Virus record (IMG/VR): IMGVR_UViG_3300016457_001310
Span: 1-24,210 of that record
Reading direction: 5' to 3' (one strand)
DNA: 24,210 nucleotides
The position numbers and the translations under genes were made by a program. The notes beneath the pieces are model-generated. The model saw only the letters and a list, made by a program, of their open reading frames with translations. It was not told the origin of the DNA and did not search any database. The number at the start of each line of letters is the position of its first letter. Positions within the stretch are counted from its first letter, which is position 1. Shown piece after piece: positions 191 to 23,318 of this stretch.

Positions 191-559
191 TTAGACGCTG
201 CCCATTATCTCCTCTATGAATCCGTAGGGGAAGCTTCTGAGTGTGCCCTGTGTCTGGGTTATCGTAACCCTGTACTTCATCGAGGCTAGCAGGGTCTTTG
301 TATGGAACCTGATGACTGGGTTGCCCAGCGGGCCAGAGAAGTCTGTGCAGATGAACTTCTGGTAGTTCTGACCATCAACAGCGATGTACTCGCACACCGT
401 CACAGCATCACCCTCAGCAAGCTGGGAGAGATCTATGTATCCCTCCACCAGGTAGTCATCGTCGTTGGGCCCGAGCTCGACAACCGTTGTCTCGGTGTTG
501 AGATCCGATGGGGATACGGTTCCGCTGTACCTGTTCTTGGTCTGGATAACTATAGGCAT
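191..559 (-). CDS. 122-aa beta-rich putative structural protein, paralog B of 5085-5453
   Basis: Gap-free alignment to the ORF at 5085-5453 with about 60/122 identities counted by hand. GGTGA RBS. Beta-strand-like alternating pattern. Confidence 0.85.
   Translation of the reverse strand: MPIVIQTKNRYSGTVSPSDLNTETTVVELGPNDDDYLVEGYIDLSQLAEGDAVTVCEYIAVDGQNYQKFICTDFSGPLGNPVIRFHTKTLLASMKYRVTITQTQGTLRSFPYGFIEEIMGSV
224..272 (+). repeat. 49-bp perfect direct repeat, copy 1
   Basis: GTAGGGGAAGCTTCTGAGTGTGCCCTGTGTCTGGGTTATCGTAACCCTG is identical to 5118-5166. It encodes RVTITQTQGTLRSFPY on the minus strand. Confidence 0.95.
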
Positions 560-661
560 CTAGGGATCACCGTGCTGGCTGGGGTCGTCGAGCAGTATCT
601 CAAGCCCGCAGATCACGATAATAAGAAAAATGATTGCGTATACGAGGAGCAGCGGATTCAT
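560..661 (-). CDS. 33-aa single-pass membrane micro-protein
   Basis: Not in the ORF track. MNPLLLVYAIIFLIIVICGLEILLDDPSQHGDP*. GGTGG RBS upstream. Stop codon abuts the ATG of the next gene at 559 and the ORF fills the gap. Confidence 0.65.
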   Translation of the reverse strand: MNPLLLVYAIIFLIIVICGLEILLDDPSQHGDP

Positions 662-675
662 ATATATATCCACCG

Positions 676-876
676 CTAGCGCTGGGGTGGCTCCGACCTC
701 TCGTCGGATGGACGCTTCCTGAAGTAGAAGAAGACCACTGTCTGCGCCAACACGATGAGCGCGCCTATAACCTGGTCGGGTAGCCTTATCAGCCCAGCTC
801 CGTGAGCTATGAAGCTACCGATGATCGAGCCCCATATCATCACGGCGAACACGTTCCTGAAGCTCGTCCTCACCAC
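676..876 (-). CDS. Small two-TM membrane protein, holin-like topology
   Basis: Two hydrophobic segments (VFAVMIWGSIIGSFIAHGAGLI; VIGALIVLAQTVVFFYF) followed by a charged tail RKRPSDERSE. Start overlaps the stop codon of the upstream hydrolase gene. Confidence 0.7.
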   Translation of the reverse strand: MVRTSFRNVFAVMIWGSIIGSFIAHGAGLIRLPDQVIGALIVLAQTVVFFYFRKRPSDERSEPPQR

Positions 877-1418
877 GGTTTCACCACCCTCGTTACATAC
901 CTAACCCAGCCCAGTCCATATATATAGAAGTGCCTGTCCCAAGTTGGTATTGCTACTTCCTGGGTCTGAGGCTCGAAGAGGATCGGTATTATCCTAGACT
1001 GCCAGTAGTCCATGCACTCCGCTGGATCCTCAGAGATGCAGTACAGAGCCACGTTATAGGCGTGGTACCCCAGGAACTCGCCCCTCTCATCAACTATCTT
1101 CCCACCAGTTTCAAACATGCAGTTGAAGCCCAGCAGAGACGCCACGACCTTTGCGAGGGCACTGAAATCATCGCAATCAATCAATCCTCTGTAGGTAAAG
1201 CCGTACTCCTCCTTTATCCTCCTAAACACCCTCAGGAACTCGACGAACGCGCTGGGGGTGAAGAAGTTGAACCAGTTGTCGACACCTATGGCAACACCAT
1301 CGTCGTAGAAAGCAACGTTCTGCCACACACCCCTACCGTAGTATTGCTCTATCAGTTGTTTCACCACGCTATCGTGGAGATAGTACTGGAACTGATAGGA
1401 TCCCATACGGAGAGACAT
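870..1418 (-). CDS. Papain/transglutaminase-like cysteine hydrolase (DCDDF...HAYN...EPQ type)
   Basis: Ordered motifs DCDDFS, GYHAYNV and LFEPQT give a Cys-His-Glu triad like the papain-like C-terminal domain of MOA-type agglutinins and related phage proteins. Confidence 0.75.
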   Translation of the reverse strand: MSLRMGSYQFQYYLHDSVVKQLIEQYYGRGVWQNVAFYDDGVAIGVDNWFNFFTPSAFVEFLRVFRRIKEEYGFTYRGLIDCDDFSALAKVVASLLGFNCMFETGGKIVDERGEFLGYHAYNVALYCISEDPAECMDYWQSRIIPILFEPQTQEVAIPTWDRHFYIYGLGWVRYVTRVVKPW

Positions 1419-1467: not shown

Positions 1468-2859
1468 TTACCACCCCAACTTCAGCACCTTACGAAGTTT
1501 ATCGATGTGCTTATCTCTTTCCTCAGTAAGCACAGACACTCTCTCCAGCCTCTTAATCCACATGCTTATAGTTTCACGCAACACGTTGTCTGACACATTC
1601 TTCAATTGTGATCTCTGTGGCTCAATCTTATGATCTATAAGGAATCCATAATAGAAATCCGCTACCTGAAATGCCTCAAGTTCAGGTACACCCAACACAT
1701 GATACGCATAATTATCCTTGCCAGCTATCCAATAGGAGAACCTCTTCCTAAATAGACGGTATTGTTCAACAGCTTCCCTATAATCTCTCGGTGGTCTAAT
1801 AGCCATTAGACCCCTTGCTTTAGCATACTCAACCTGTCTAAGTACTGCTCCCTGGCGATACGGATTATCCCTAGTAATAACTATCAGCATGTTAGTCTCT
1901 CCCTCCCTGTAGTCAAAGGCTCCCCACGATACTGATGCAATATCTATCTGATGCTTTGGTATGCGACCAAGTAGATACTCTATCTCCTCATCGGTGAAGC
2001 CCTTAGATCGAAGCATTCTGTACCTCTTAGCCTCTACAGCCACATGCGGAGGAACGCTGTGCAGTGTTGGGTCAACCTCTCTCAGATCGCTAACTAGGAG
2101 CGGTCTAAATGGCTCGTTCACACCGTCACCAGCAACCTCAGCCTCTATCACAGCTACTGCGTTGGGTAGTTGCGAGGCAACGTCTCTGATCATACCGAAG
2201 TCTATTGCGTAGCTATCGCCCGAATAGTAGTAGTTACCGAAACGACCAGAGGAGATGCTAGTATCTGTTGCGGATATGGAGCTCCAGGCACATGGATCTA
2301 TGGTGTCGACATCACGAACCTGGCCTGGAGATGATCTACATGACTTCAATGCAGATCCAGATACCTGTAGAGACGCGTGGATAATTCCAGACAAGTCAAC
2401 TGCTTCACTAGCTAACTCGGTTTCTGTGCCATTCACAACCTTATACAGCTTGTGATCCGCTGTAGCTAGCGAAGCATCAAAGTAGTTGTAGTACAGTGTG
2501 TTTACACCGTACCACCTATTGACATTGCATATAAAGTTCGTTGATAGCTTAAATAGCTGAACAACCTTCTTATCCGTTAGAACTGTTTCGTATAATGTAC
2601 CTAGACCAGATCCTCGCTTAGTCCAGATCATCCTTGCATAGGCTTTTCCTAGGGCTCTGAGATACGCTAGTTGCGAAGTAGATGGAACCTCTAGATCAAC
2701 CCTACCCACACCACCATCCTTTATCTTCGCGCTGTCTACCGAGTTGTCACATATCGTTAGCCTCCCATAGGCATCGACACAGATGTACACCTTATCTGCT
2801 ATCATCTTCGCTAGGATCTCCCTGTTCCAGAACCCCACCCGATACTCACCCCGATCCAT
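1468..2859 (-). CDS. 463-aa putative fibre/receptor-binding protein
   Basis: N-terminal DNSVDSAKIKDGGV resembles the 'svtxaKIxDgaV' trimeric fibre repeat. Beta-rich S/G/Y-rich middle region. Located in the fibre cluster. Lower GC than its neighbours. Function is inferred. Confidence 0.6.
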   Translation of the reverse strand: MDRGEYRVGFWNREILAKMIADKVYICVDAYGRLTICDNSVDSAKIKDGGVGRVDLEVPSTSQLAYLRALGKAYARMIWTKRGSGLGTLYETVLTDKKVVQLFKLSTNFICNVNRWYGVNTLYYNYFDASLATADHKLYKVVNGTETELASEAVDLSGIIHASLQVSGSALKSCRSSPGQVRDVDTIDPCAWSSISATDTSISSGRFGNYYYSGDSYAIDFGMIRDVASQLPNAVAVIEAEVAGDGVNEPFRPLLVSDLREVDPTLHSVPPHVAVEAKRYRMLRSKGFTDEEIEYLLGRIPKHQIDIASVSWGAFDYREGETNMLIVITRDNPYRQGAVLRQVEYAKARGLMAIRPPRDYREAVEQYRLFRKRFSYWIAGKDNYAYHVLGVPELEAFQVADFYYGFLIDHKIEPQRSQLKNVSDNVLRETISMWIKRLERVSVLTEERDKHIDKLRKVLKLGW

Positions 2860-2875: not shown

Positions 2876-4624
2876 TTATATTCGCTTCCTCAGCTCCTCG
2901 TAGGTTGCCCTTATGTATATGAGCGCTAGGTGGAACTGGAGGAAGTGCTCGGGCATTATCAGGTCGCCCGTCATCACAAGCATCGGGTTGCTGACGATGT
3001 CGTAGGCCTCCGAGAGGAGGCTCTCAACCTCTGGTATGCTCTCTCCCGTAGCATCCCTGTACTTGTGGTAGGTATCCCTAACGAACCTGTACAGATGTGC
3101 GCACGCCTCCATCATGTAGTTGACATGCATAGCCCTAACCTCGTCACCGCTCGAAACTGGGCTCAGCTTGGAGAGCACGCTCTCTAGGTCGCTTAGGGAG
3201 CTGGGGTAGGGCTCCGAGGTTATGGAGCTCCACAGCTCCTTGGTACCCTCCTTAACCCTGTGGATCAGGTTCAGCGGATCGTTGAAGTGGCTAGCCCTGA
3301 TAACCTCACCGAGGAGGGGCTTCTCAAGCCTATAGCCGTACACCTCCACGATCCACTTAAGGATCTCGTCTATAGCCCTACCAGCCTCGCGAAGCACCTT
3401 CAGAGGCTCCTTCCTGGTTAGGTACTCTGGAACCACATAGTCCCTCAGGATGGTCACTACCAGCCGCACAATCGATACGCTGTCGAGAGCCGTAGAAGCG
3501 TCTAGAAGGCTCTTCAGAGCGCTACGAGCAACCCTATCAAGAGCCTTAACAGCGTCCGCTACCGTGGAAGCAACAAGCTTGGCTACCCTATCCAGCGACA
3601 GAACCACATCGCTTACCGCTCTCCTAGGCTCCTTCGAGGCTAGGTACTCAGGTACAACAACGTCGAGAACGCTCCTAAGAGTAGACCTAGATACGTAGTC
3701 GCTAGCCACAGTCGCGTCATAAACCCTGAGAGGAATGCCACGACCAACCCAGTCGGTTGCCAACACAGTATCGGGTAACCTAATGGAGGGTTCCTTCGTA
3801 GCCCTATCCAGAGCCCTAGCAACATCGCTCAGGACCTTGCCCCTAACCGTCGATAGCACGTACTCGGGTACAACAGCGTCGTACACGTTCTTAACCAGCG
3901 CCCTAAAGACGCTGTCCCTAGGTATCAACGACTCGCGCCACGCCTTGGTGCTGTGCCTAACCAGGCTATCTATGCCCCTACACGCATCGAGAACCACCAC
4001 CATAGAGGTCTTCGAGAGCGCATCCGTAGCCCTACCGATGTCCCTAACCAGCTTCGCACCCTCCTTCGATAGCCTATCAAGCAACACCCCCGCATCCACC
4101 AGCGTGCGGACGAAGAAGGCTGAAACCCTAGCGAGATCTGTTAGCTTCAGAGAATCCGCCACCACCTTAGCGCTCAGCCTGCTCAGAGCATCCACAGCCC
4201 TGCCACTATCCGCTAGGGATCTCCTGAAGTGAACAGCCCTCGACACGGAGTCTACAACACTCGTCGCCTCCCTACCCACCTTCAGGGGCGCCTTGACGAG
4301 CATATCGGCTACCGCACCAGAATCCACAAACGCGCGCACGAAGTGTGCAGACACGGAGAATCCGTCTCTGCTGGTCACCGACTCGCGTACCGAGCCAGCA
4401 ACCAGCTTCGACAACGCATCGAGAATCTTAACGCCATCGAAGAGCACCTTGGATCTGTATGCTATTAAAGCATACTCGGGGATTGCATAGTCGTAGACAG
4501 CTACTGACCCCACCTTCGCAACAACGTCGCTCGCTAGAACAGTATCCGATACCTCCACGCAATAAGTAACCCCTACTAACGTGAATAGAGGTCTCTGAGC
4601 TGGTAACGCGCTGGTGAAGCTCAT
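2876..4624 (-). CDS. 582-aa repetitive structural (fibre shaft-like) protein
   Basis: About 20 degenerate D-x5-D units rich in V/A/S/R, with four (I/V)PEY variants. The C-terminal domain has three G(D/E)-x-(I/V)-x3-H repeats (GEVIRASHFN, GDEVRAMHVN, GDLIMPEHF). GGTGA RBS. Confidence 0.75.
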   Translation of the reverse strand: MSFTSALPAQRPLFTLVGVTYCVEVSDTVLASDVVAKVGSVAVYDYAIPEYALIAYRSKVLFDGVKILDALSKLVAGSVRESVTSRDGFSVSAHFVRAFVDSGAVADMLVKAPLKVGREATSVVDSVSRAVHFRRSLADSGRAVDALSRLSAKVVADSLKLTDLARVSAFFVRTLVDAGVLLDRLSKEGAKLVRDIGRATDALSKTSMVVVLDACRGIDSLVRHSTKAWRESLIPRDSVFRALVKNVYDAVVPEYVLSTVRGKVLSDVARALDRATKEPSIRLPDTVLATDWVGRGIPLRVYDATVASDYVSRSTLRSVLDVVVPEYLASKEPRRAVSDVVLSLDRVAKLVASTVADAVKALDRVARSALKSLLDASTALDSVSIVRLVVTILRDYVVPEYLTRKEPLKVLREAGRAIDEILKWIVEVYGYRLEKPLLGEVIRASHFNDPLNLIHRVKEGTKELWSSITSEPYPSSLSDLESVLSKLSPVSSGDEVRAMHVNYMMEACAHLYRFVRDTYHKYRDATGESIPEVESLLSEAYDIVSNPMLVMTGDLIMPEHFLQFHLALIYIRATYEELRKRI

Positions 4625-5084: not shown

Positions 5085-5453
5085 CTAGATCTCCTCAAGC
5101 ACTTGAACGACGAACCAGTAGGGGAAGCTTCTGAGTGTGCCCTGTGTCTGGGTTATCGTAACCCTGGGCTGGGCATCCTTTGGAAGCGTCATCGAGAGCA
5201 GGTGCACAACGGGGTTATCGAGAGGCCCGTCAACCGCTATGGTATCCAGCTTCCTCCTGTTAGACCCGTCGACAGCTATGTAGATAACCAGCTTCACCGA
5301 GTCACCGCTCTGGAGCTGCGATAGATCTACGTAGCCCTCCAGGATTATCGCGTTCTCGTATGTCCCGAGGTTGATCAGATCGGTCTCCACGTTCAGATCG
5401 CTGGGCGTTACGGTGCCTCGGTACTCCTCCTTACGCTTTATCCTGACTACCAT
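5085..5453 (-). CDS. 122-aa beta-rich putative structural protein, paralog A of 191-559
   Basis: Same length as and collinear with 191-559. Shared blocks GTV-PSDLN-ET, EGY-DLSQL, YIAVDG and RVTITQTQGTLRSFPY. GAGGT RBS. Confidence 0.85.
   Translation of the reverse strand: MVVRIKRKEEYRGTVTPSDLNVETDLINLGTYENAIILEGYVDLSQLQSGDSVKLVIYIAVDGSNRRKLDTIAVDGPLDNPVVHLLSMTLPKDAQPRVTITQTQGTLRSFPYWFVVQVLEEI
5118..5166 (+). repeat. 49-bp perfect direct repeat, copy 2
   Basis: Identical to 224-272. Confidence 0.95.
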
Positions 5454-5465
5454 TGCTAGGCTACC

Positions 5466-6017
5466 TCACCTGCTCATCTGTATGTAGTACCTAATCGTGA
5501 TGGCGTCCCCAGCGTCGAAGTTCACTGGGACTGGGTTGAACGTCTTCCTAGCCAGCAACACACCACCAGAGGACGCGTTGAAGACCCCAGCCTCGGAGAT
5601 CTCCATACTCCCGCTAAGCCCGTCCTCGCTTGAGAACGTAGCTTCCAGGAGCGCGGTATCGCCCTCAACATCGGTCGTTGTCTGGCTAACCGAAGCCTGC
5701 TTCCTAGCGACCTCGGCTTCGAGAGCCGTATCAGTAACGGATTCGGATGTAGTGCCAGTACCGATAGCAACATACGTGAACGGCGTGCCACCGAGGTTGA
5801 ACACCAGCTTAATGATCTCCGCGAGCCCAGCGTTCGTCACAACGTTCTTCCTGAAGTAGAAGAGTACCTGGGTCTCTGGCAGAACACCCTTGGGGATGAC
5901 AGGCACTGGGTTACCGCGAGCAAGCGTAACCAGGTACTTCGGTCTACCCCTCCTGTCCCAGACTATGACCTCTACCCAGCCAGCGATAACCACCCTAGAG
6001 CTGTCTCCCCTCCACAT
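5466..6017 (-). CDS. Tail-collar / tail-fibre-anchor-like protein
   Basis: Motif series N-VVTNAG...YVAIGTG...TDTALEAEVAR...ISEAGVFN...LLARKTF...ITIRY matches the pattern of phage tail-collar fibre (DUF3751-like) N-terminal domains. Confidence 0.75.
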   Translation of the reverse strand: MWRGDSSRVVIAGWVEVIVWDRRGRPKYLVTLARGNPVPVIPKGVLPETQVLFYFRKNVVTNAGLAEIIKLVFNLGGTPFTYVAIGTGTTSESVTDTALEAEVARKQASVSQTTTDVEGDTALLEATFSSEDGLSGSMEISEAGVFNASSGGVLLARKTFNPVPVNFDAGDAITIRYYIQMSR

Positions 6018-7413: not shown

Positions 7414-8127
7414 CTAATGCTGTACCAAGCCAAGCGCCTTCACTACCCAGTAAACGACCTCAGATGCCCCCCTAGGCGGCTCGTCAAAGTTGGTGATAGC
7501 CGTGGCGTCCCTAATGTGGTAGAGCGCGGGTATAGGAGTGTCCCTAACATCGCTCGTAAAGCCGTGGTCTGACACCACCAGCCACCGCCTAGGCTTGAAC
7601 GTCTCTATCAGGTCGAGAGCCAGCTTGCATGCCAGGTCGTACCACTCTATCGCTGTTCTAAGCGCGTCTATGCTTGGTATGGTGGAGAAGAAGTGGTGAT
7701 GAGGCTGATCGGGTACGGGGTACCAAACGAAGAGGATATCCGCATCCCCGTTAGCCTTTACGTAGCTGTGGTACTTCATCAACACCTCCCTAAACCGCTC
7801 CTTAGGCGGCGAGAAGAAGTCCACCCAGTTAGCAGGCCTCGGAACGCCGTGGTATATCGGTGGCATGCATGCTGGTATATTGATAGCCTTTACCCTCCTA
7901 CCCGTAACGAGATCCCATACCCAGGTCGTTATGGTTCCAGGAACGAACTTCCTTAGCTGGAAGAAGGTTGCCATAACCGTGGGGGTCTCTGGAATCACAT
8001 CGACGTACATCATGCAGCGCTTAGCCCCTGGATAGCTCCAGAGCCTACGTATACTCTCTCCCCACCAACAAAACACATTTGCAAAGACGTAGCTGAGACC
8101 GTCTAGCACCACCACCAGGACATCCAT
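7414..8127 (-). CDS. Alkaline phosphatase superfamily protein (phosphodiesterase/sulfatase/phosphotransferase-like)
   Basis: Metal-binding motifs in canonical order: VVVLDG, Thr nucleophile in ETPT, PDQPHH, VVSDHGF and a late His (LYH). Confidence 0.8.
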   Translation of the reverse strand: MDVLVVVLDGLSYVFANVFCWWGESIRRLWSYPGAKRCMMYVDVIPETPTVMATFFQLRKFVPGTITTWVWDLVTGRRVKAINIPACMPPIYHGVPRPANWVDFFSPPKERFREVLMKYHSYVKANGDADILFVWYPVPDQPHHHFFSTIPSIDALRTAIEWYDLACKLALDLIETFKPRRWLVVSDHGFTSDVRDTPIPALYHIRDATAITNFDEPPRGASEVVYWVVKALGLVQH

Positions 8128-8131: not shown

Positions 8132-8425
8132 TCACGTCGGAGGCGCCCAGTGCACGCCTAGAATAGCCGCCACGAAGCTGAGGACTATGACCATAACCGT
8201 TATCATCGCGCCGACAAGAAACTTTATCAAGCCGTTGCGTCTCTCGACAAGCTTGTTTATGAGCCGCTTTATCTCGCTGACATCGTTCTCGATGTTATCG
8301 ACTCGTTGCTCTACCCGTGCTAATCTCTCGCGCATATCCATTACCATGAGCATCAGCTCCCTTATTTCCTGGTTGGGTACGGGATCATTTGAAGCCCCAT
8401 ACTGCGAAGTTCCCTCCCTCGACAT
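8132..8425 (-). CDS. Coiled-coil protein with C-terminal TM helix
   Basis: Heptads MRERLARVEQRVDNIENDVSEIKRLI, then hydrophobic LIKFLVGAMITVMVIVLSFVAAILGV. The start may be downstream of 8425 because it overlaps the MTase by 41 nt. Confidence 0.75.
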   Translation of the reverse strand: MSREGTSQYGASNDPVPNQEIRELMLMVMDMRERLARVEQRVDNIENDVSEIKRLINKLVERRNGLIKFLVGAMITVMVIVLSFVAAILGVHWAPPT

Positions 8426-10909: not shown

Positions 10910-13900
10910 CTACCTACCGTATATTGTCTGTATGCGTTTCTTCTCAAGCTCCGCACCGTCAACTATCAGCGCTATCTCATCATCGGTGAGACCGTACTTC
11001 TTGAGAGCCTGTAGCTTCTGTATCAGGGTGTTCCTATCTATGATACCGTTGGCGTAGGCGTAGACCAGCCTGTTGCGGTACCACGCTATCTGCCTCCACA
11101 CGATGCGGTTCCTAGCCAGCTTCTTGTAGTACTCTATCTGCTTCTGGTACCTCGCTACGTCTATACCCCTAGCTCTGAGCACATCGCTGAGGATCTGCTC
11201 CCACTCTGGTATGTACCTGGCATCGGCTACGAGCTGGCGGATGGTCGGTACCAGCCAGCTAAGCACCCTGTACTCCTTGCGTAGCTGGAGAGCGAGGCTG
11301 AACACCTCAAGCTCCTTCCCGACCCAGCCGCCCTTCCTCATCCACTCAGCTACCTTGCTAGCGACCTCGCGAGACACCGTGAAGTACTCGTAGAGCCTCC
11401 TGTACTCAGCAACGAGCTGGTTCACCTCGCCCGCTATAGACCTAGCCTCTATGTACCTCAGCCACAGATCGGCAAAGTCCTTGGGAACCCTCCTAAGCTG
11501 TAGCACCCTATCGATTATGGTTCTGGGCACCTCGATGTACTCGACCATGGACGCTATGGTTCCTAGGCTAGGTACGTACTCCCTAGCGGACTCTATGAGT
11601 AGCTCGTAGTATACGCGCTTCTCGATCAGCTCTATCTCCTTCGGGGTGAAGCCGTAGCTCTTAGCGTCGTCGAGGAGCTTCTTCCACTCATCCTCAGAGA
11701 TAACACCGTACCTGAGAGCCCTAGCAGCAACGCTTAGAACCGCCTTGTAGTCGCTCTTAACTGGCCTCACCTGTATGTATTTCAGCCATATATCTATCCA
11801 CTCCTGTGGAACCCTCCTAGCCTCAAGCACCTTCCTAATCAGATCCTCCTTGAGCACGAGATACTCAGCCAGCGTTGCGAGCATCGTCGGTGTCGGTAGG
11901 TAGGCTCTCCTAAGCTCCATAGCCTCGGCAATCTCCTCCTCCAGATCCACGCGCTCCTTGATGAACTCGATCTCCTTGGATGTGAAGCCGTACTGACCGA
12001 GCTTATCTATGAACTCCTCCAGCTCCTTCTTGGTGATAACACCGTACCTGAGAGCCCTTATCTTGACCGAGAGCAACGACTTGACATCGCTCTTAATAGG
12101 CTTAGCCTCTATGTACTTCTTCCAGTAGTCTATCCACTCATCGGCTACCCTATGGTACTTCAGAGCGCTCAGAACCTTGTCCTCGGGCAAGACAATGTAC
12201 TCAGCAAGTGTTGCGAGCTGCGACGGTGTTGGAATCCTAACCTTAGCCTCCTCCAGCTTCTCCTCCAAGTCTATCCTATCCCTAAGTATCTTGATCTCCT
12301 CGTCGGTGAAGCCGTACTCCTTAGCCTTATCGATTATCTCGTCAAGCCTCTTCTTCTCTATGACGTTACGTAGGTAGGCACGGATAGCCACAGATATGTA
12401 CGCCTTGTAGTCGCTCTTCAGCGGCTTTACCTCTATATACTTCTCCCATATCTCCCTCCACTTCTCGGATACGCCATACCTCTTCAGAGCCTCCTCAACG
12501 AGATCCTTGGGTAGCGCTAGGTACTCGGCTAGAACCGCCAGCGTCGATGGAGACGGAATCCTCTCCCTAGCCGCCTGCCTAAGCTCGTCTATCCTCCTCT
12601 CGAAGGCGGCTATAACGTTGTACATCACCCACTCATGAGGCGCTATACCGAACGCCTGGAACACGTCCCTGTTAGCGTCGTAGAACGCAAGCAGCTTCTT
12701 AGCCTCGTCAGCACCCTCGATAACCAGCTCACCGCCCCTCACGGTGAACTTCATAGAGTACTTACTGAGTATATCCACGACCTCGTCGATGCCCATACCC
12801 AGAGCAAGCGCGTTGTATATCCTGGTCCTGAGAAGCGTCAGCTCGTCCTGTATCGGCTTCCTAGCAACGTAGAGCCTCCAGTACTGAAGCTCGTCGCTCG
12901 GCATGTTGAAGTGCTCCAAAGCCTTCAGGCTCGTGCTGATGGCTTCGGGCACGATCTCTAGGAGGGTCGCGTAGGTTGTTAGACCAGGCGTGTACCAGAC
13001 CACGTTGGCGTCTATATACTTCTTGGCGAGATCCTCGGAGAAGCCCAGCTTCTTGAGTTGCTCGATAGCCTCCGAGACGGCTATCCTCCTCGATCTGAGC
13101 AGGTTGATGATCGCCTTAGCCTTGACCTCCCTCTCGAACCTATAGACCATGAACTCCACGGAGAGCTCTATCGCCTCCCTAACGATGGGGTGCTCATGCA
13201 TCTTCTCCACTAGCTTGGATACCCAGCCCTTGGCCTCGTCAATCGTTACATAGCCGTAGCGCAGAGCCCATAACACCGACCACAGCAGGTACCTAGCGTA
13301 GAACCTCGTGCGCTCCCTAGCCTCAAGCTCTATGATCGCCTCGGCATACTTGCTCCAGGCCTCCCAGTAGCCAGTATCTAGCACTAGGGACAGCTCCTTG
13401 CCAGTGAGGCTCTTTACCGTCTGCTTGAAGAACTTCTCGTTTATCGCGCTGACAATATCGGCAATGATCTCCCTAGCCTTGGCTGGATCCACCACGTAGT
13501 AGGCTACGCTGCGTATGATGTACCTATACGCCTCTCTGTAGATATCGAGAGCCCTATCCATAGTTGCCCTGATCTCCAGGAGCTTGGACTCGGCTGGTAG
13601 GAACGCTATCGGGTACTCAACGGTTGCCGATACCCAGTCCCTCTTCTCTAGGTCGAAGTAGCCTACCTCGAACTTAACCGTGAAGAAACCCGAGAGTAGC
13701 TGGTGTAGGTGGTCTAGGCTCCATATACCCTCCTTGTATAGGTTGATGAAGCCAGTTCTGAGCAGTGTGCGCTCCTCGGTTAGGGCGTTTATTGTCTCGG
13801 CTATCGCTACCCACGGTATCCAGTACGGGTGTATACCCGTAGCCTGCAACACCCTACAGAACTGCTTGAGGTCGAAGACTATCTCACCCTTCTTCAGGTA

Positions 13901-16900
13901 CTGGAGGTAGAGATCCGCCATCGGTCTAGCCGACGCAGTGGTGCCCTCGGGTATGAGACTCTTGGTTATCTCGTGGATAGCCTTCTTCAGACCGATGCCG
14001 TATGCAGACCAGTAGTCGAAGAGGCCCCACCTTGTCATCCATCTCAGGTCTATCTTGGTGGGTATGTCAGCCATAAGCTCGATCATTATGGCGTTATCGG
14101 TTGGCCACCCAGGTTGCCACGGAAACCTGGCATAGTCATGCCACTTCATGTAGGTGCTGATCATCTTTTGCAACAAATCATATCTGAAGTTCAGCTCCTT
14201 GGGAGCCACAGCCTTCACAACCGTTGGGTCTAGACCGAAGGTCTTCATTATGTTCTCGTCGACTGGTGCCTCAGGGTTCCACAGCTCACCAGCGATACCC
14301 CTCCAGAAGAACTCTGCTAGCTTCTCTGGCGGTGGGTACCTGTAGTGCAGTAAGTAGAACATGAACGCCACGTCTGGCGTGAAGCCGTGCATAGCCATAA
14401 CTGCCGCAAAGTGCCTTGGATCCTGTATGATGTCCCTCACCATCATCCTAGCTAGCTCGCTCGGGCTCGGTATTGCCCACACCATCGATACTGGGAAGAG
14501 CCTCTCCTTCCTGGTGTATGACGTAAACCTATCCCATATCCTCAGAGCCCCCAGCTCCCTATCGTAGAGCTCGGATACATTGCCGAGTTGCTTAGCGACC
14601 TCCTCAGCGAGCTTGGTATTGAGACCATAGATCCTCTCTATAAAGCCCTTGTAGATACCACCCATCCTGAGCTGGTCTACAAACATCTTGTAGTTGTCCA
14701 TGAGTATCGGTGTCGGTATAGACCTCCTAACCAAGTTGAGAGTGTGCTCCATTGGTGGAAGCTCGACGGTTACGTACTCGGTCAGGTTGTACCTAGTGAT
14801 TGCCCTGGTTGGCTCGGCCCACCATATCATGTGGCCTATGATCATGTACCTCGCTACGTCTGGCATGAACTTCTCGAACTGCGAAACAGCCTTCTCAAGA
14901 ACGTCCTTCAGCTTCAGTCTTATCCTAGCACCGACACCGAGTGGCTCACCACTTATCTCGGTATCTGGTAACGCAGATACCAAGGGCTTCAGTATGAGGC
15001 CAACACCGTAGATGGCGGCCGATATCAGCACGCCAACGTTGAGCAGGTTGTATATGAACCTCACGGGGTTCTTCTTGGCCTCCTCTATCACCTCGCCGAG
15101 CTTCTCGACCATTATCGGTGTGAGCGGTAGTAGTATAGCCTCGATTATGGGGAACCATGGAGACGCAAGTATCTCGTAGAGCGCTGGGCTAGACCTAGCC
15201 ACTATCAGGTTGGTTATAGCCTTCATAGCGTTGCCGATAGCTGTAGCGATATCCTTACCGACCTCTCCAATAACCGAGATAACAGTCATTACAGCTCTGC
15301 CTACCCACGAAGCAAGCGTCTTAAATGCCGAGACAAACCAGTTACCGAGTCCCGTCAGGATGTTCCATAGCCACTGCGCACCCTCGACGATCTTCTGTCC
15401 GATCCACTGTAGAGAGTTCCAAACTGTCGTTACTAGCCTCTCTGGTAGCTGCATAACCGCGTTCACGAAGCCAGTGAGGTAGACACCCACCAGCTTCAGG
15501 TTCTCAGACACCTTGGTAAGAGCCTCGCCTAGCTTCGCGAAGCCCTCGCTTACCAGCGTTCCGAGCTTGGTCAGGTAGTCCCACAGTGATATGCCTACCT
15601 CTCTAAGCGTCCCGAAGACGATCTGCGGAATCCTCTGGATCTCCTCAACAACACCGCTTACCAGCGACGGGAACTGCTCGGTGAAGAACCTAGCCACCGT
15701 CTCCAGTCCGCTCCTAACCATGTCTAGGAACTGGGTGAACGCCTCGGTAATGGGCTTCACAACGTTCTCGCTGATCCACGTGCCTAGACCAGCTACCGCC
15801 TCCTTTACCTGGTCTACGAGGCTCGGAAGCGTCTCGGCTATGAAGCTCCTAACGGTCTCGAACCCCTCGGAGATGAAGCCGATCAGGTTCTCAAGAGCGC
15901 CCCTAAGCGGGGCGAGCACGTTGCTCTGGATGAAGCTCCATATACCCGCTAGGGCGCTCTGGATCTGGCTAACCATGCTAGCGATAGCCGACGATACGCT
16001 TCCGAGACCCTGCTGAACCGCTGATAGGATGCTCTGCACAGCCGATGTTAGAGGCGCGATAACGTTCTGCTGGATCCACGAAGCGATCCCCGCAACAGCA
16101 TCGCGGAGCTGAGCAACGAAACTATTGATGTAGCTCGGCAACTCCTCGGTGAAGAACCTAGATACGGTCTGTAGACCGCTGTTGATGAAGTCTATGAAGC
16201 TCTGGAAAGCCGCTGTTAGGGGTGCTACAACGTTCTCCTGTACCCAGGTAGCTATTCCAGATAGCGTCTGCTGTATAGACGCAATAGCCTGGCTTACGAA
16301 TGCTGGTAGCTCCTCGGTGAAGAACCTGGAGACCGTCTCCAGACCGCTACTAATTAGCTGTATCAACTGGCTAAACGCGTTGCTCAGCGGTGCAACAACG
16401 TTCTCCTGGATCCAGGTGGCTAGCTCACCAACAGCTTGCTGAACCATCGCTGGTATCTGCGACACAAAGCTCGTCACGGTGTCGAGACCGCGTGTAATCG
16501 TCTCTATCAGGTTATTTACAGCGGTTAGCAGGGGTGTGACCACATAGTCGTTTATCAGCGTGCTGATGTCGCTTATCCATTTCTGGAGCTCCGCAAACAT
16601 CTGCGGAACGGTCTCGGTGAAGAACGTCGTTAGCGTCGATATGCCCTGGCTGATCCAGCTCATCAGGTTGTTAATAGCGCTGAACAGCGGGTCGATTATG
16701 TCCTCCTGTATCCAGCTCCATACACCGCTTATCTGGCGACTTAGCCAATCCAGAGCGTTCTCAACCGTGCCTGGTATCTGCTGTAGGAAGCTCCACACCT
16801 GCTCAACGAGGTTCTTGATCGTGTCGAGGAACGGCTTAGCTACCGTGTCCCAGAGCCTGCGACCTATCTCCTCGACCGTCTGAGCAAACCAGGAGGCGAG

Positions 16901-17158
16901 CTCGCTCATACGGTCGTAGAGCCACTGCTGTAGCTGTCCAATCGGGTCGGTGATGCCGTGCTCCGAGGTAACGAGAGCCTCTAGATCGAGCTCCTCTAGA
17001 TCCCTGATAACCGTTACGGTGAAGACCTCCTCGATACCCTTGCTCCACCTAAGCTCCCATAGACCAGCCGCGCTGAGAGTAGCCGCTAGGTACTTAGCGT
17101 CCTCGGCGGTGAAGAGCTCCAGCCTCTGATGGCTGGTCACAGCTACACCCGAGAACAA
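10910..17158 (-). CDS. Giant (about 2080 aa) virion terminal-structure/fibre protein with tape-measure-like N-terminus and C-terminal helical repeats
   Basis: Uninterrupted 6.2-kb ORF. Residues ~70-660 carry amphipathic W/F-periodic repeats (WIQENVVAPL...GLETVSRFFTEELP). The C-terminal third has ~6 repeats starting P(S/T)PxxLAxLAEY, several with YGFTxxEI. The GTG at 17140 (RBS GGGTG) is an alternative start. Confidence 0.85.
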   Translation of the reverse strand: MFSGVAVTSHQRLELFTAEDAKYLAATLSAAGLWELRWSKGIEEVFTVTVIRDLEELDLEALVTSEHGITDPIGQLQQWLYDRMSELASWFAQTVEEIGRRLWDTVAKPFLDTIKNLVEQVWSFLQQIPGTVENALDWLSRQISGVWSWIQEDIIDPLFSAINNLMSWISQGISTLTTFFTETVPQMFAELQKWISDISTLINDYVVTPLLTAVNNLIETITRGLDTVTSFVSQIPAMVQQAVGELATWIQENVVAPLSNAFSQLIQLISSGLETVSRFFTEELPAFVSQAIASIQQTLSGIATWVQENVVAPLTAAFQSFIDFINSGLQTVSRFFTEELPSYINSFVAQLRDAVAGIASWIQQNVIAPLTSAVQSILSAVQQGLGSVSSAIASMVSQIQSALAGIWSFIQSNVLAPLRGALENLIGFISEGFETVRSFIAETLPSLVDQVKEAVAGLGTWISENVVKPITEAFTQFLDMVRSGLETVARFFTEQFPSLVSGVVEEIQRIPQIVFGTLREVGISLWDYLTKLGTLVSEGFAKLGEALTKVSENLKLVGVYLTGFVNAVMQLPERLVTTVWNSLQWIGQKIVEGAQWLWNILTGLGNWFVSAFKTLASWVGRAVMTVISVIGEVGKDIATAIGNAMKAITNLIVARSSPALYEILASPWFPIIEAILLPLTPIMVEKLGEVIEEAKKNPVRFIYNLLNVGVLISAAIYGVGLILKPLVSALPDTEISGEPLGVGARIRLKLKDVLEKAVSQFEKFMPDVARYMIIGHMIWWAEPTRAITRYNLTEYVTVELPPMEHTLNLVRRSIPTPILMDNYKMFVDQLRMGGIYKGFIERIYGLNTKLAEEVAKQLGNVSELYDRELGALRIWDRFTSYTRKERLFPVSMVWAIPSPSELARMMVRDIIQDPRHFAAVMAMHGFTPDVAFMFYLLHYRYPPPEKLAEFFWRGIAGELWNPEAPVDENIMKTFGLDPTVVKAVAPKELNFRYDLLQKMISTYMKWHDYARFPWQPGWPTDNAIMIELMADIPTKIDLRWMTRWGLFDYWSAYGIGLKKAIHEITKSLIPEGTTASARPMADLYLQYLKKGEIVFDLKQFCRVLQATGIHPYWIPWVAIAETINALTEERTLLRTGFINLYKEGIWSLDHLHQLLSGFFTVKFEVGYFDLEKRDWVSATVEYPIAFLPAESKLLEIRATMDRALDIYREAYRYIIRSVAYYVVDPAKAREIIADIVSAINEKFFKQTVKSLTGKELSLVLDTGYWEAWSKYAEAIIELEARERTRFYARYLLWSVLWALRYGYVTIDEAKGWVSKLVEKMHEHPIVREAIELSVEFMVYRFEREVKAKAIINLLRSRRIAVSEAIEQLKKLGFSEDLAKKYIDANVVWYTPGLTTYATLLEIVPEAISTSLKALEHFNMPSDELQYWRLYVARKPIQDELTLLRTRIYNALALGMGIDEVVDILSKYSMKFTVRGGELVIEGADEAKKLLAFYDANRDVFQAFGIAPHEWVMYNVIAAFERRIDELRQAARERIPSPSTLAVLAEYLALPKDLVEEALKRYGVSEKWREIWEKYIEVKPLKSDYKAYISVAIRAYLRNVIEKKRLDEIIDKAKEYGFTDEEIKILRDRIDLEEKLEEAKVRIPTPSQLATLAEYIVLPEDKVLSALKYHRVADEWIDYWKKYIEAKPIKSDVKSLLSVKIRALRYGVITKKELEEFIDKLGQYGFTSKEIEFIKERVDLEEEIAEAMELRRAYLPTPTMLATLAEYLVLKEDLIRKVLEARRVPQEWIDIWLKYIQVRPVKSDYKAVLSVAARALRYGVISEDEWKKLLDDAKSYGFTPKEIELIEKRVYYELLIESAREYVPSLGTIASMVEYIEVPRTIIDRVLQLRRVPKDFADLWLRYIEARSIAGEVNQLVAEYRRLYEYFTVSREVASKVAEWMRKGGWVGKELEVFSLALQLRKEYRVLSWLVPTIRQLVADARYIPEWEQILSDVLRARGIDVARYQKQIEYYKKLARNRIVWRQIAWYRNRLVYAYANGIIDRNTLIQKLQALKKYGLTDDEIALIVDGAELEKKRIQTIYGR

Positions 17159-18869: not shown

Positions 18870-19244
18870 TTAGTACGGTGGTACGGCTCCTATGAGTGCC
18901 TCTATGATCCTGTCGAGCACTGCTGGATCGCACTTGTAGGCCGTTACGAAGTAGCTCTTGATGCCGCTAACCTCCTTCTGGAGTGTTAGACCGCTGTGGC
19001 TGAACATTGTCTTAGCTACTATCTGCGCGAAGGCTAGATAGGGAGCCCATAGACCAGTTGGCACACCCTCTTCGCTCAGGATGTTCCTAGCTACCTCCAC
19101 AGCGTTGTATATGGCGGCAGTAGCGCTCTCGAACCTAGCCTCCATAATGGGCTTGACAGCCGTCAGCCTGTTGGTCACGTTGGTACCGTCGTACTTAGCC
19201 TCGTACTTGGCTCTCATATCACCTAATCTCTTAACGATGGGCAT
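18870..19244 (-). CDS. Major capsid protein 2, SIRV2-like (Adnaviria) fold
   Basis: AKYEAKY...NILSEEGVPTGLWAPYLAFAQIVAK...SGIKSYFVTAYKCDPAVLDRIIEALIG matches the rudivirus MCP pattern as I recall it (AKWQAKF...VLTQYGITGPNRAIYQGFGLKVAR...NGLKGYYISAFNANPQVLDAVVNIITG). Strong GGGGGTGA RBS. Confidence 0.88.
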   Translation of the reverse strand: MPIVKRLGDMRAKYEAKYDGTNVTNRLTAVKPIMEARFESATAAIYNAVEVARNILSEEGVPTGLWAPYLAFAQIVAKTMFSHSGLTLQKEVSGIKSYFVTAYKCDPAVLDRIIEALIGAVPPY

Positions 19245-19270: not shown

Positions 19271-19627
19271 TTATCCAACTATCAGGTTCGCGATCTTGTC
19301 TAGTATAGCGGGGTCGGCACCCTTAGCAACGAACCACTGCTTGAGACCGCTGGCAATCGCTTGCAGGTCAGCACCCTCGTGGCTCAGAGCCTTGCTTGCT
19401 AGCTTCATCGCGAACGCGTAGTAGACACCGTGGAACCCTGCTGGAACACCCTCGCTCTCAAGTATGTTCCTAACGCGCTCCCTGACAGCCGCCATCACGC
19501 CGCTGCCCTCGATGTACCTAGTCACAGCGATGTCCTTTACCGCACCGTATCTAGTACCTGTCTGATCTGGTGGTGTCTTTGCCTTGAACTTCTCTACTCG
19601 GTCTGCAAGGGTCTTGACTATGGGCAT
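19271..19627 (-). CDS. Major capsid protein 1, SIRV2-like (Adnaviria) fold
   Basis: Paralog of MCP2: shared MPIVK-L-D start, RNIL--EGVP-G, Y-AFA, SH-G--LQ, SG-K--FV and DPA-LD-I. Confidence 0.88.
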   Translation of the reverse strand: MPIVKTLADRVEKFKAKTPPDQTGTRYGAVKDIAVTRYIEGSGVMAAVRERVRNILESEGVPAGFHGVYYAFAMKLASKALSHEGADLQAIASGLKQWFVAKGADPAILDKIANLIVG

Positions 19628-19664
19628 AGGTACCTACCTCGATGCTCAATTCGGGCACGAAGCG

Positions 19665-19672
19665 TTAATATA
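19665..19672. promoter_or_regulatory. Bidirectional TATA element between the MCP operon and the divergent genes
   Basis: TTAATATA on plus, TATATTAA on minus, in a 100-nt gap between divergent starts at 19627 (-) and 19728 (+). Confidence 0.55.
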
Positions 19673-19727
19673 CGTAGTATGTAATAGAGAGCGTCTGGAG
19701 CTGTATCGCAGTGCTGGTGGTTCGGGT

Positions 19728-20264
19728 ATGACCAAGAACGAGATGAATATACTGCCCGATAAAGCCGAGGAAGCCGAGTCCCATCTCTTCGAGGTGTCTC
19801 AGGATGGAACGGTCTGGATATGGAACATCAAGGAGCCCGTCATAATCGAGGTCATCAAGCTGTTCGTGCGGAAGTGGGTCGATACCATAGAGAACTTCGC
19901 TCAGTACGTAGCTCGTAGGCTCCAGCGCAACGGTGTCATCACCGAGGTCAACTCGACTATTTCGCCAACGAGCGACGGCTACGCGCTTAACATCACTATC
20001 AGGGTGAGGGGCGTGAAGTACGATCTGCTGAAGAAGCAGTGGCGGCTGATCAAGAGGCATGCTCAGGATAGGACGACTGTTAGCTATAGGTATAAGAGGA
20101 TGCTAGACCTTCTAGAGAGGTTAGAGAAGGCGGGTGACAGGCTTGGCAGAGCGATTAGAGATCCTCTTACCGCGGAGTATATACGAGCGGATAAAGAGGA
20201 AGGCGGAGCAAAAGAAGATGCGTCTCCAGGACCTCGTGCTCAGAGCCATAATGAAGGTTCTTGA
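19728..20264 (+). CDS. Hypothetical 178-aa protein
   Basis: The track ORF from 19584 overlaps MCP1. The in-frame ATG at 19728 (MTKNEM) has a GGTGG RBS. Confidence 0.8.
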   Translation: MTKNEMNILPDKAEEAESHLFEVSQDGTVWIWNIKEPVIIEVIKLFVRKWVDTIENFAQYVARRLQRNGVITEVNSTISPTSDGYALNITIRVRGVKYDLLKKQWRLIKRHAQDRTTVSYRYKRMLDLLERLEKAGDRLGRAIRDPLTAEYIRADKEEGGAKEDASPGPRAQSHNEGS

Positions 20265-20277
20265 GGAGGACTGAGCC

Positions 20278-20616
20278 ATGGACGTGAACAGGCTGGTCAA
20301 CTGGCTCCTAGGTGGCTGCGGTAAGGAGAGGGAGAAGATAGAGCTACAGTCGATACTGTTCCAGCTCGCGGAGGAGCTCCACAGAGGCAACGCAACCGAG
20401 GACGAGGTTACCAACACCGTTGCGGAGCTCTGCGAAGCCATAGTCGTGCTCGCACAGCAATGCGGAAAGACCATATCTCAGGATCAGTGCGTAGACATGG
20501 TTACGAGAGCCGTTAAGAACACCGTCCCCTTCGGAGCGATGAGCATGAAGCTCAGGTCGCTCATAAGGTCTAGAAGGGGCTCTAGGGCCACATCCTCAGA
20601 GTCCTCCATACTCTGA
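20278..20616 (+). CDS. Hypothetical 112-aa helical protein with four Cys and a basic tail
   Basis: GAGGAGG RBS. Follows the previous gene by 13 nt and is followed by a T-tract. Confidence 0.8.
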   Translation: MDVNRLVNWLLGGCGKEREKIELQSILFQLAEELHRGNATEDEVTNTVAELCEAIVVLAQQCGKTISQDQCVDMVTRAVKNTVPFGAMSMKLRSLIRSRRGSRATSSESSIL

Positions 20617-20636
20617 CAAACACCGTTTTTCACCTC
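20617..20636 (+). terminator. Oligo-T terminator
   Basis: CAAACACCGTTTTTCACCTC immediately after the stop, followed by a pyrimidine-rich tract. Confidence 0.55.
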
Positions 20637-20714
20637 CCTATTCTCTCCCCTAGGGGCTGTGACCGAAAGGCTTATTAGTGTACACCCCCTAGTGGGTATC
20701 TGGGATGGCACACC

Positions 20715-22892: not shown

Positions 22893-23318
22893 TCAGATGA
22901 TCTCGGATAGCTTTTTGGCTCGGTCGAACATCTGTTTTGTGATTACGTACCTAACGCCTTTCTCCCACTGTTGCTTCTCAAGAACCTCAAGTGGGAATAC
23001 GTACCACTGCTTCTCTTCCGAGACCCTGACCGCTATGTATGCCTCTCCCCCTGCTCTCCTAGCGAAGTTCTCCAGCATCCACACCTTGGGCGCGGCGAGG
23101 TATATCGCGTCTCTATGTTTCCTGAGCTTAACCTCGAAGACCAGAACCCTGTACCTAGAACCATCGAACTTAACAGCGAAGACATCTGGATAGAAAACCC
23201 TTCTTGTCTTAGCACCAGAGGCGGGGGCTCTCATTACTGCATACCCTGCTCTTCTAAGCTTCTTAACCAGCTCCAGCTCAGCTTGCTTACCCCTTCGATA
23301 GAAGCTCATTTCCAGCAC
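22893..23318 (-). CDS. hjc: Archaeal Holliday junction resolvase (Hjc family, PD-(D/E)xK)
   Basis: RRGKQAELELVKKLRRAGYAVMRAPASG...YPDVFAV...VFEVK...LENFARRAGG-AYIAVR...W is the full Hjc motif set. Confidence 0.93.
   Translation of the reverse strand: MLEMSFYRRGKQAELELVKKLRRAGYAVMRAPASGAKTRRVFYPDVFAVKFDGSRYRVLVFEVKLRKHRDAIYLAAPKVWMLENFARRAGGEAYIAVRVSEEKQWYVFPLEVLEKQQWEKGVRYVITKQMFDRAKKLSEII

Follow-up and report, generated by a model that had tools for sequence, protein, structure and literature searches.

Among the systems by which archaeal viruses leave their hosts, the virus-associated pyramids, formed by PVAPs (SIRV2 P98/STIV C92 and SIFV gp43), serve the exit of filamentous Ligamenvirales-type viruses through membrane plus S-layer. 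PVAPs are small membrane proteins with one N-terminal TM plus a helical domain and need no enzyme. Tailed phages instead use holin-endolysin cassettes, for example the XhlA-XhlB-XlyA type of Bacillus PBSX/SPP1-like phages, and the pseudomurein endoisopeptidases PeiW/PeiP (Peptidase_C71) of methanogen viruses are the only established archaeal-virus wall-lytic enzymes (PMC10791045, PMC12596118). According to a 2024 review, no S-layer-degrading enzyme has been identified in any archaeal virus and the holins of archaeal viruses remain elusive (PMC10791045). Outside pyramids and budding, how such viruses exit is largely unknown. A further relevant system is the C-terminal papain-like peptidase domain of the Marasmius oreades agglutinin (MOA) and the Polyporus squamosus lectin PSL1a (Pfam PF18021 Agglutinin_C/PF18022 Lectin_C_term; PDB 2IHO, 5MU9, 3PHZ, 5MUA), in which the catalytic residues C215/H257/E274 of MOA are experimentally established, activity requires Ca2+/Mn2+, the domain doubles as a dimerisation domain, and the protease is coupled to a lectin (PMC8244254).

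The window analysed here, 24,210 nt in length, is the whole of the IMG/VR contig IMGVR_UViG_3300016457_001310, an incomplete genome of an uncultivated rudivirus-like filamentous archaeal virus that encodes two Sulf_coat_C capsid proteins and Hjc. An earlier note had described in it a leaderless Cys-His-Glu papain/transglutaminase-like enzyme translationally coupled to a 66-aa two-TM protein and followed by a 33-aa single-TM peptide, and this observation was confirmed. All three ORFs were located on the minus strand: the protease gene (1418..870, ATG start, 182 aa), the 66-aa ORF (876..676, GTG start) and the 33-aa ORF (661..560, ATG start). Compared with the 87-92% identical locus L002 (loci carrying relatives of the protease are numbered with L), pN/pS was 0.15, 0.22 and 0.20, respectively, and 0.11 for the 122-aa gene downstream, indicating that these are real genes under purifying selection.

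Direct scans of the three proteins against Pfam and PHROGs gave no useful hit, the protease having none in Pfam at E<=1, and PHROGs contained no family for any of 77 relatives. Megablast and tblastn searches of the region, the protease and two relatives against 50,697 deposited phage and archaeal-virus genomes found no match; thus, no cultured virus in this set carries the family. A scan of IMG/VR with the protease alignment returned only the window itself, and a scan of GTDB genomes returned one 3.8-kb contig of a Thermoprotei MAG. Only 4 close homologs were found at first, but profile searches extended the family to 87 proteins, including stand-alone metagenomic relatives of 130-190 aa, and many of the 87 carried precomputed PF18021/22 assignments. 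In direct Pfam scans, the relatives P0010-12 hit weakly, P0014 reached 25.4 bits and P0015 reached 29.8 bits, above the cutoff of 27.1, so that membership of the window protein is transitive, seen only through intermediate sequences. A narrow profile of 9 sequences matched MOA in PDB at E=0.004, and in the same register a profile of 77 sequences, with the window protein first, matched MOA (2iho/5mu9) at E=8.6e-16 and PSL (3phz) at 3.1e-15 over about 105 residues.

In these alignments, C82, H119 and E149 (codons at 1173-1175, 1062-1064 and 972-974) corresponded to C215, H257 and E274 of MOA, and Q151 to the substrate-contacting Q276 of the E-P-Q motif, whereas Y76 lay at the oxyanion-hole position. 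C, H, E and P were invariant in the 77 sequences and Q was conserved in at least 90%; the Cys-His-Glu reading of the earlier note was therefore correct. An acidic cluster, D81/D83/D84 plus D47, was also conserved, with D81/D83/D84 matching the D-C-D-D of MOA. An AlphaFold2 model built from 5 close sequences reached a pLDDT of only 34, but the 77-sequence alignment gave a pLDDT of 84.1 and a pTM of 0.83. In this model, Cys is at the N-terminus of helix 82-95, His in strand 115-127 and Glu at the end of the neighbouring strand 143-149, so that the catalytic residues sit on the canonical elements. Foldseek ranked MOA and PSL1a at positions 1 to 9, with probabilities of 0.99-1.0 and TM scores up to 0.49 over the shared domain. 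No lectin domain was found, and no N-terminal hydrophobic stretch was observed, the highest hydropathy being in the internal catalytic helix; only 4 of 77 family members had such a stretch.

The 66-aa ORF overlapped the protease stop by 7 nt (GTGGTGA), with a Shine-Dalgarno-like motif, GGTGGTGA, just upstream, such that translational coupling is plausible, although inferred. A lambda-style dual-start motif was considered for the GTG-GTG start but was rejected, since the two starts differ by no charged residue. The predicted protein had a basic N-terminus with a conserved FRN motif, two TM-like segments at about residues 9-27 and 32-50, and a C-terminal tail with 5 basic and 3 acidic residues and a conserved FYFRK motif. 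The 33-aa ORF started 14 nt after the 66-aa gene; its alternative GTG start at 673, giving 37 aa, was not conserved in the relative L002. The peptide had a single very hydrophobic segment and an acidic C-terminus. It was conserved as an ORF in L002-5 and L016, with 7.2 synonymous against 4.8 non-synonymous changes, but was absent in L001. A weak resemblance to the 36-aa TM peptide following the protease in L042 (E=0.005, pairwise) was not conclusive, and homology to the TM peptides of L042, L047 or L040 could not be shown. Neither the 66-aa nor the 33/37-aa protein hit a holin family in Pfam or PHROGs.

The TAG stop of the 33-aa ORF directly abutted the ATG of a soluble 122-aa protein gene (559..191, minus strand), which had no family hit but had a paralog at 5085-5453 (49% identity, E=1e-42). 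Upstream of the protease, the 463-aa protein (1468..2859, minus strand) belonged to a 420-460-aa family ending in KLGW and was 41% identical to the 421-aa protein of L002; a second, partial paralog at 2-166 on the minus strand ran off the left end of the contig. Its N-terminal motif was shared with the 264-aa discoidin-domain protein upstream of the protease in L010 (E=2e-7), in which F5_F8_type_C was a weak hit. The 420-aa and 122-aa genes next to the distant homolog in L010 were suspected to be homologs of the 463-aa and 122-aa genes of the window, but comparison showed that they are not. On the same strand, 6.7 kb upstream, a 97-aa coiled-coil protein with a C-terminal TM anchor (8132..8425) matched PHROG phrog_689 "holin" at E=1.7e-6 over nearly the full profile, phrog_1193 "hemolysin" at 7e-5 and Pfam XhlA (PF10779) at E=2e-4 with 21.8 bits, below the cutoff of 34.7, scores which coiled-coil composition may inflate. 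It is a possible third lysis-associated component, and proteins of the same architecture directly follow the protease-2TM pair in L015 and L035; PHROG scans of neighbouring genes in these two loci did not reveal the virus type.

The pairing with small membrane-protein genes recurred in many distant viral contigs. In 15 of 17 protease lineages (60% identity clusters), a same-strand TM ORF of 130 aa or less abutted the protease gene, often with a 1-16 nt overlap, compared with 20 of 101 for other genes of 100 aa or more in the same loci (Fisher p=4e-9, computed on the uncurated count of 16/17). A stricter version based on gene calls gave 11/16 against 15/102 (p=2e-5). However, small TM genes are common in archaeal viruses, and the test gave each lineage several chances (any member) whereas the background used one locus. 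The pairing is also not obligatory, as the closer relatives L006-L009 (66-70% identical) had a soluble 125-aa gene downstream instead and L010/L011 had a 420-aa protein there. Homologs of the 66-aa protein followed the protease in L001, L002-5, L016, L015/L048, L022 and L055, the window copy being 43% identical to that of L015 (E=6e-13) although the two proteases were only 27% identical; in L015, L022 and L055 the proteases were 27-31% identical. In L055, the pair was next to a Phage_Mu_F head-morphogenesis gene (E=2.5e-12), and the closest cultured relative of this contig was a Methanoculleus tailed virus. The module is therefore shared by filamentous and head-tailed viruses, which argues for a host-directed rather than a virion-specific role. 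TM partners in L033 and L037 hit holin PHROGs (5e-4 and 9e-4) and Phage_holin_3_3 (0.007), but these hits are weak and could reflect TM or coiled-coil composition.

Searches for pyramid proteins, in which SIRV2 ORF98 and SIFV gp43 were compared by tblastn and phmmer with the window and related loci, including L001, gave nothing below E=0.04 and nothing in a TM protein, and a TM survey of all window ORFs found no 90-100-aa protein with one N-terminal TM followed by a helical domain. This evidence is weak, because the contig is incomplete and PVAPs diverge beyond sequence recognition, so that a pyramid protein may exist elsewhere in the genome. Conversely, SIRV2 and SIFV lacked both cassette families. 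An archaeal host was indicated by the rudivirus-type capsid proteins and Hjc, and the one genome hit was the Thermoprotei MAG.

The earlier note had inferred from this layout, which it likened to endolysin-holin cassettes, a protease-based endolysin for S-layer cleavage with a holin-like exporter, and this interpretation was partly supported: three conditions named beforehand as able to refute it, concerning the enzyme class, the linkage to TM genes and the presence of a pyramid protein, were examined and none refuted it. The best reading, held at about even confidence, is an egress cassette built on the logic of holin-endolysin systems but with a protease as the wall-breaking enzyme. In this view, the peptidase would be made without a signal peptide and accumulate in the cytoplasm, while the 66-aa protein would accumulate in the membrane, possibly assisted by the 33-aa peptide and the XhlA-like 97-aa protein, and these membrane proteins would eventually permeabilise the membrane or let the enzyme through. 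The protease would then cleave the proteinaceous envelope (S-layer protein or its membrane stalk) of the archaeal host, so that filamentous virions can leave. Because characterised MOA-type peptidases are inactive without Ca2+/Mn2+, low cytoplasmic metal could keep the enzyme silent until it is exposed to the outside. The active site of MOA is built across a dimer with metal sites, and for the stand-alone viral protein both can be proposed only by analogy. The analysis itself established the enzyme family, the catalytic residues by alignment, the predicted fold, the gene overlap, and the conservation of the protease/small-TM pairing across many lineages and two virus morphotypes, whereas the substrate and its cleavage, pore formation, late timing and metal gating are inferences from sequence and model alone.

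The rival that survives best, although considered unlikely, is a virion-associated entry enzyme, carried at the filament terminus with lectin- or adhesin-like proteins and cleaving the glycosylated S-layer or a proteinaceous receptor such as pili during adsorption and penetration, a split version of the lectin plus protease design of MOA, with the small TM proteins as envelope components or unrelated. It is favoured by the variable, adhesin-like proteins encoded upstream of the protease, namely the 463-aa family, Big_1 Ig-like and C-terminally anchored 320-aa proteins in L006-9, Gly-rich C-terminal fibre-like proteins in L001, L015 and L035, and proteins with a shared C-terminal motif and an N-terminal anchor in L023-L030, and by a Gp80 fibre-like protein and a 2082-aa protein in the window block; moreover, a cytoplasmically assembled virion needs no signal peptide on the enzyme. 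Against it, the most conserved neighbour is a small TM protein rather than any one structural protein, the pair in the tailed virus lies next to head-morphogenesis genes and away from fibre genes, and virion-associated lysins of phages are usually domains of larger tail proteins rather than free 140-180-aa proteins. Still less likely is a membrane-associated processing protease, recruited by the 2-TM protein to the inner face of the membrane to trim viral envelope or structural proteins (maturation) or host membrane proteins (for example receptors, for superinfection exclusion) without breaching the cell envelope. The co-inheritance of one specific 2-TM family would fit a physical partnership, the two capsid paralogs, as in enveloped lipothrixviruses, suggest that there may be envelope proteins to process, and both ends of a 2-TM hairpin could face the cytoplasm, where the leaderless enzyme is. 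However, the partner TM proteins belong to several unrelated families across lineages, which is typical of holins and not expected for a specific docking subunit, the capsid genes are 17 kb away, processing of rudivirus or lipothrixvirus capsid proteins is not known, and the Ca2+/Mn2+ requirement of MOA-type enzymes (PMC8244254) fits an extracytoplasmic site better. A transglutaminase-like cross-linking enzyme, an alternative raised in the earlier note, or a catalytically silent dimerisation scaffold stabilising virions at high temperature is not favoured and very unlikely, since, although the papain and transglutaminase folds are related, weak Foldseek hits included transglutaminase 2 (E=0.88), protein-glutaminase and the transglutaminase-like protease LapG, and the MOA domain also serves in dimerisation, all significant sequence and structure matches were to proven proteases, no Pfam Transglut_core hit was found, the third residue is the Glu of the MOA-specific E-P-Q motif and not the Asp of transglutaminases, and the invariance of the full catalytic set in 77 sequences argues against a silent scaffold.

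The locus provides a conserved two-gene candidate, with clear catalytic residues, for the missing system by which archaeal viruses would cut a protein cell wall and get out. It also moves a protease subfamily described as fungal-specific (PMC4764322) into archaeal viruses and defines a new small-membrane-protein family, with FRN and FYFRK motifs, that travels with the protease. A bolder and more tentative reading, judged somewhat less likely than not, is that this would be the first enzyme-plus-holin type lysis system for archaea bounded only by a protein S-layer, in which a metal-gated MOA-type cysteine protease acts as the endolysin and is released by a new 2-TM holin family, the module being exchanged between filamentous (Adnaviria) and head-tailed archaeal viruses as an alternative to pyramid-based egress. 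If confirmed, the cassette would show that the holin-endolysin logic was re-invented, or transferred, for proteinaceous cell walls, and would supply heat-stable S-layer proteases as tools.

Compared with the pyramid proteins, which solve the same problem of exit and are likewise small membrane proteins, the window cassette has a 2-TM hairpin plus a protease and showed no homology. The cysteine-peptidase endolysins (CHAP, NlpC/P60) and PeiW/PeiP are also papain- or transglutaminase-fold Cys-His enzymes used by viruses to cut peptide bonds of the host wall, but no sequence match to these families was found, and their substrates are (pseudo)murein peptide cross-links, which a Thermoprotei-type host lacks. 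LapG-type calcium-dependent bacterial transglutaminase-like cysteine proteinases were the next-best structural neighbours after MOA and PSL1a, at Foldseek E of only about 0.2-0.5; their calcium site superimposes on MOA site A (PMC8244254) and they use a Tyr at the oxyanion position, as the viral protein may (PMC4764322), but LapG is a periplasmic enzyme with a signal peptide that releases an adhesin. With the XhlA-XhlB-XlyA type cassettes, the locus shares a leaderless, putatively wall-directed enzyme gene tightly linked to a small 2-TM protein with a charged C-terminal tail, a coiled-coil tail-anchored protein, possibly XhlA-like, in the same genome, and partner TM proteins that are diverse across lineages, as holins are, whereas the enzyme belongs to a protease family not known as an endolysin and the host presumably has no peptidoglycan. 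With MOA and PSL1a, the viral protein shares a homologous catalytic domain, including the D-C-D-D-F helix start with the nucleophile Cys, the H-A-[YW]-N strand with His, the E-P-Q strand with the Glu that anchors His and the substrate-contacting Gln, and an aromatic residue at the oxyanion-hole position, but it is viral/archaeal rather than fungal, lacks the N-terminal ricin-B beta-trefoil lectin domain, and is a stand-alone protein with a different N-terminal 70 residues.

All genes at the locus run on the minus strand. ORF 1418..870 encoded a protein of 182 aa, and ORF 876..676, with a GTG start and encoding 66 aa, overlapped its stop by 7 nt (GTGGTGA), with a GGTGGTGA Shine-Dalgarno-like motif lying just upstream. 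ORF 661..560, with an ATG start and encoding 33 aa, followed after 14 nt, while a longer 37-aa version beginning at a GTG was not conserved in relatives; the TAG stop of the 33-aa ORF abutted the ATG of a 122-aa gene at 559..191. Hydropathy analysis gave two TM-like segments in the 66-aa protein (about residues 9-27 and 32-50), the tail of which carried five basic and three acidic residues, and one very hydrophobic segment in the 33-aa peptide, whereas the 182-aa protein possessed no N-terminal hydrophobic region. Against L002, a metagenomic locus of 87-92% identity, pN/pS was 0.15, 0.22, 0.20 and 0.11 for the 182-aa, 66-aa, 33-aa and 122-aa genes, respectively, and even the micro-ORF therefore behaves as a coding gene. 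The arrangement described in the earlier note, a papain/transglutaminase-like enzyme with no obvious signal peptide followed by a two-TM protein and a single-TM peptide, is confirmed.

The cassette was located within a duplicated gene set, consisting of two 122-aa paralogs (191-559 and 5085-5453; 49% identity) and two members of a 420-460-aa family ending in KLGW (1468-2859 and 1-166, all minus strand), one of which is cut by the contig end. The protease cassette sat between them, and gene order differed from that of L002, which suggests module shuffling. A 582-aa protein encoded at 2876-4624 (minus strand) contained at least four repeats with a V-P-E-Y motif, spaced about 70-100 aa apart, and gave no family hit.

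The window is the entire IMG/VR contig IMGVR_UViG_3300016457_001310, with a GC content of about 53%, and several features show a distant, uncultivated relative of rudi- and lipothrixviruses. Two adjacent paralogous capsid proteins of 124 and 118 aa (18870-19244 and 19271-19627, minus strand) matched Pfam Sulf_coat_C (E about 1e-12) and were 25-30% identical to rudivirus coat proteins in PDB and GenBank, including those of SIRV and SSRV1; two copies suggest a heterodimeric capsid, as in enveloped lipothrixviruses, and the contig looks like an undescribed Ligamenvirales-like lineage. An archaeal Hjc resolvase (22893-23318, E=2e-21), two GT4 glycosyltransferases and a methyltransferase were also encoded. 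Within the block of glycosyltransferase and methyltransferase genes, a 237-aa protein (7414-8127, minus strand) matched the type I phosphodiesterase/alkaline-phosphatase superfamily (E=4e-6) and a 183-aa protein (5466-6017, minus strand) resembled podophage fibre protein Gp80 (E=1e-4, below cutoff). A giant ORF at 10910-17158 (minus strand) encoded 2082 aa, with an N-terminal third of repeated helical units (weak Baculo_PEP_C and ApoLp-III-like hits), a TM-like segment near residue 700 and a C-terminal part of repeated modules of about 100 aa; it may be a terminal-structure or tape-like protein, and a similar 1864-aa protein precedes the protease region in locus L010, which carries a distant homolog of the protease. 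At about 19600-20700 the coding strand switched, with the GC skew changing sign near 20 kb, and the genes from 20.3 to 22.9 kb, on the plus strand, included a ribbon-helix-helix/VapB-like protein (20715-21245); this may be the boundary between the early/regulatory and late/structural regions. The contig has no terminal inverted repeats and a gene runs off its left end, indicating that it is incomplete. The only genome-database relative of the protease was a Thermoprotei MAG contig from Guaymas, and an archaeal host with a proteinaceous envelope is the reasonable inference.

Direct scans with the enzyme were negative, and only four close homologs were found among 5.8 billion proteins. Distant relatives were found by an exhaustive phmmer search, and two rounds of profile search then gathered 87 proteins, many of them with precomputed PF18021/PF18022 domains. 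A 77-sequence profile headed by the window protein hit the solved structures of Marasmius oreades agglutinin (MOA) at E=9e-16 and Polyporus squamosus lectin at E=3e-15, aligning C82 with Cys215, H119 with His257, E149 with Glu274 and Q151 with Gln276 of MOA, the roles of which are taken from PMC8244254 and PMC4764322. An aromatic residue (Y76) fell at the position of the oxyanion-hole Trp208, and D47, D81, C82, D84, H119, E149 and P150 were invariant in all 77 sequences. AlphaFold prediction with this alignment gave pLDDT 84, whereas a 5-sequence alignment had not given a usable model, and a Foldseek search with the model ranked MOA and PSL1a first at probability 1.0, with LapG, staphopain, protein-glutaminase and other clan-CA folds far behind. 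In the predicted model, Cys is situated at a helix N-terminus and His and Glu on consecutive strands, which is the papain arrangement. The Cys-His-Glu papain-like hydrolase proposed in the earlier note is therefore right and can be named more precisely as a stand-alone MOA-type peptidase domain without the lectin domain, while the transglutaminase reading is not favoured.

Linkage of the protease to TM genes, the key test proposed beforehand, was examined in neighbourhoods of homologs collected from assemblies and from a metagenome scan (35 loci). With the proteases clustered at 60% identity, at least one member in 16 of 17 lineages had a same-strand ORF of 130 aa or less, with a TM segment, abutting the protease gene, often with a 1-16-nt overlap; one of these was a spurious embedded ORF, giving a curated count of 15 of 17. 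The corresponding rate for other genes of 100 aa or more in the same loci was 20 of 101 (Fisher p=4e-9, computed on the uncurated count of 16 of 17), and a stricter version based on gene calls gave 11/16 against 15/102 (p=2e-5), although lineages get several chances through their members and gene calling is crude. More telling, the 66-aa protein defined a family with conserved FRN and FYFRK motifs, which was located immediately after proteases only 27-31% identical to that of the window. These were found in locus L015, with the same 7-nt overlap and 2-TM proteins of 43% identity (E=6e-13), in locus L022, and in the IMG/VR contig L055 (IMGVR_UViG_3300005393_000031, 3493-4186). In L055, the pair was followed by a Phage_Mu_F head-morphogenesis gene (E=2.5e-12), the capsid-protease-like gene was closest to Methanoculleus tailed viruses, and the closest cultured relatives of the contig were Methanoculleus viruses. 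The module thus occurs in both filamentous and head-tailed viruses, which is evidence of module exchange between virus realms. Exceptions were observed in L006-L009, with a soluble 125-aa gene downstream, in L010 and L011, with a 420-aa protein downstream, in L049, with no TM neighbour, and in L056, possessing the 2-TM gene without a detectable protease.

The 66- and 33-aa proteins matched no holin family, and only weak hints came from elsewhere. Partner TM proteins in loci L033 and L037 hit holin PHROGs (E=5e-4 and 9e-4) and Phage_holin_3_3 (0.007). The window also encoded, 6.7 kb upstream on the same strand (8132-8425), a 97-aa coiled-coil protein with a C-terminal TM anchor, which hit holin PHROG 689 (1.7e-6), a "hemolysin" PHROG and, below threshold, Pfam XhlA, although coiled-coil and TM composition can inflate such scores; an XhlA-like protein in an archaeal filamentous virus would itself be unusual. 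Proteins of that architecture directly followed the protease-2TM pair in L015 and in locus L035. As for pyramid proteins, SIRV2 ORF98 and SIFV gp43, taken from the annotated records, had no homolog in the window or in related loci, no window protein had the PVAP architecture, and SIRV2 and SIFV lacked both cassette families; because the contig is incomplete and PVAPs diverge fast, this is only weak support.

The best-supported reading, considered about as likely as not, is an egress cassette in which a leaderless and possibly metal-gated cysteine protease would be let across the membrane by holin-like small TM proteins and would then cleave a proteinaceous envelope. The arguments are the conserved pairing with diverse small TM proteins, the absence of signal peptides in 73 of 77 relatives, the spread of the module across virus morphotypes, the XhlA-like companion and the absence of recognisable PVAPs. 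The gene arrangement, the family of the enzyme and the recurrent pairing come from the sequence analysis itself, whereas the substrate, pore formation, timing and metal dependence are inferred. The interpretation in the earlier note, a protease-based endolysin acting on the S-layer with a holin-like exporter, was supported in part. The main rival, which appears unlikely, is a virion-borne entry protease working with the variable lectin- or adhesin-like proteins encoded just upstream, which echoes the lectin plus protease design of MOA. In three divergent loci, the large proteins encoded just upstream of the protease (L001 8763-9983, L015 4350-6347 and L035 3148-4749) shared a glycine-rich C-terminal motif (poly-G followed by IVY.[FAL]YK), and those in L015 and L035 also shared PHROG 13336; they may be a conserved fibre or adhesin partner of the cassette. 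A membrane-tethered processing protease is somewhat less likely still. A cross-linking or scaffold role is very unlikely.

A 2024 review states that neither S-layer-degrading enzymes nor holins have been identified in archaeal viruses (PMC10791045), a 2025 survey only predicts a few peptidase-type lysins and holins by structure, and not this family (PMC12596118), and none of 50,697 deposited phage and archaeal-virus genomes carries the family. Compared with MOA and PSL1a, the enzyme is a distant relative belonging to the same peptidase family, standing alone without the lectin domain and occurring in an unexpected host range. The cassette, with its 2-TM protein and XhlA-like companion, recalls the XhlA-XhlB-XlyA cassette, and would follow the holin-endolysin principle with a MOA-type cysteine protease as the enzyme that cleaves the envelope.
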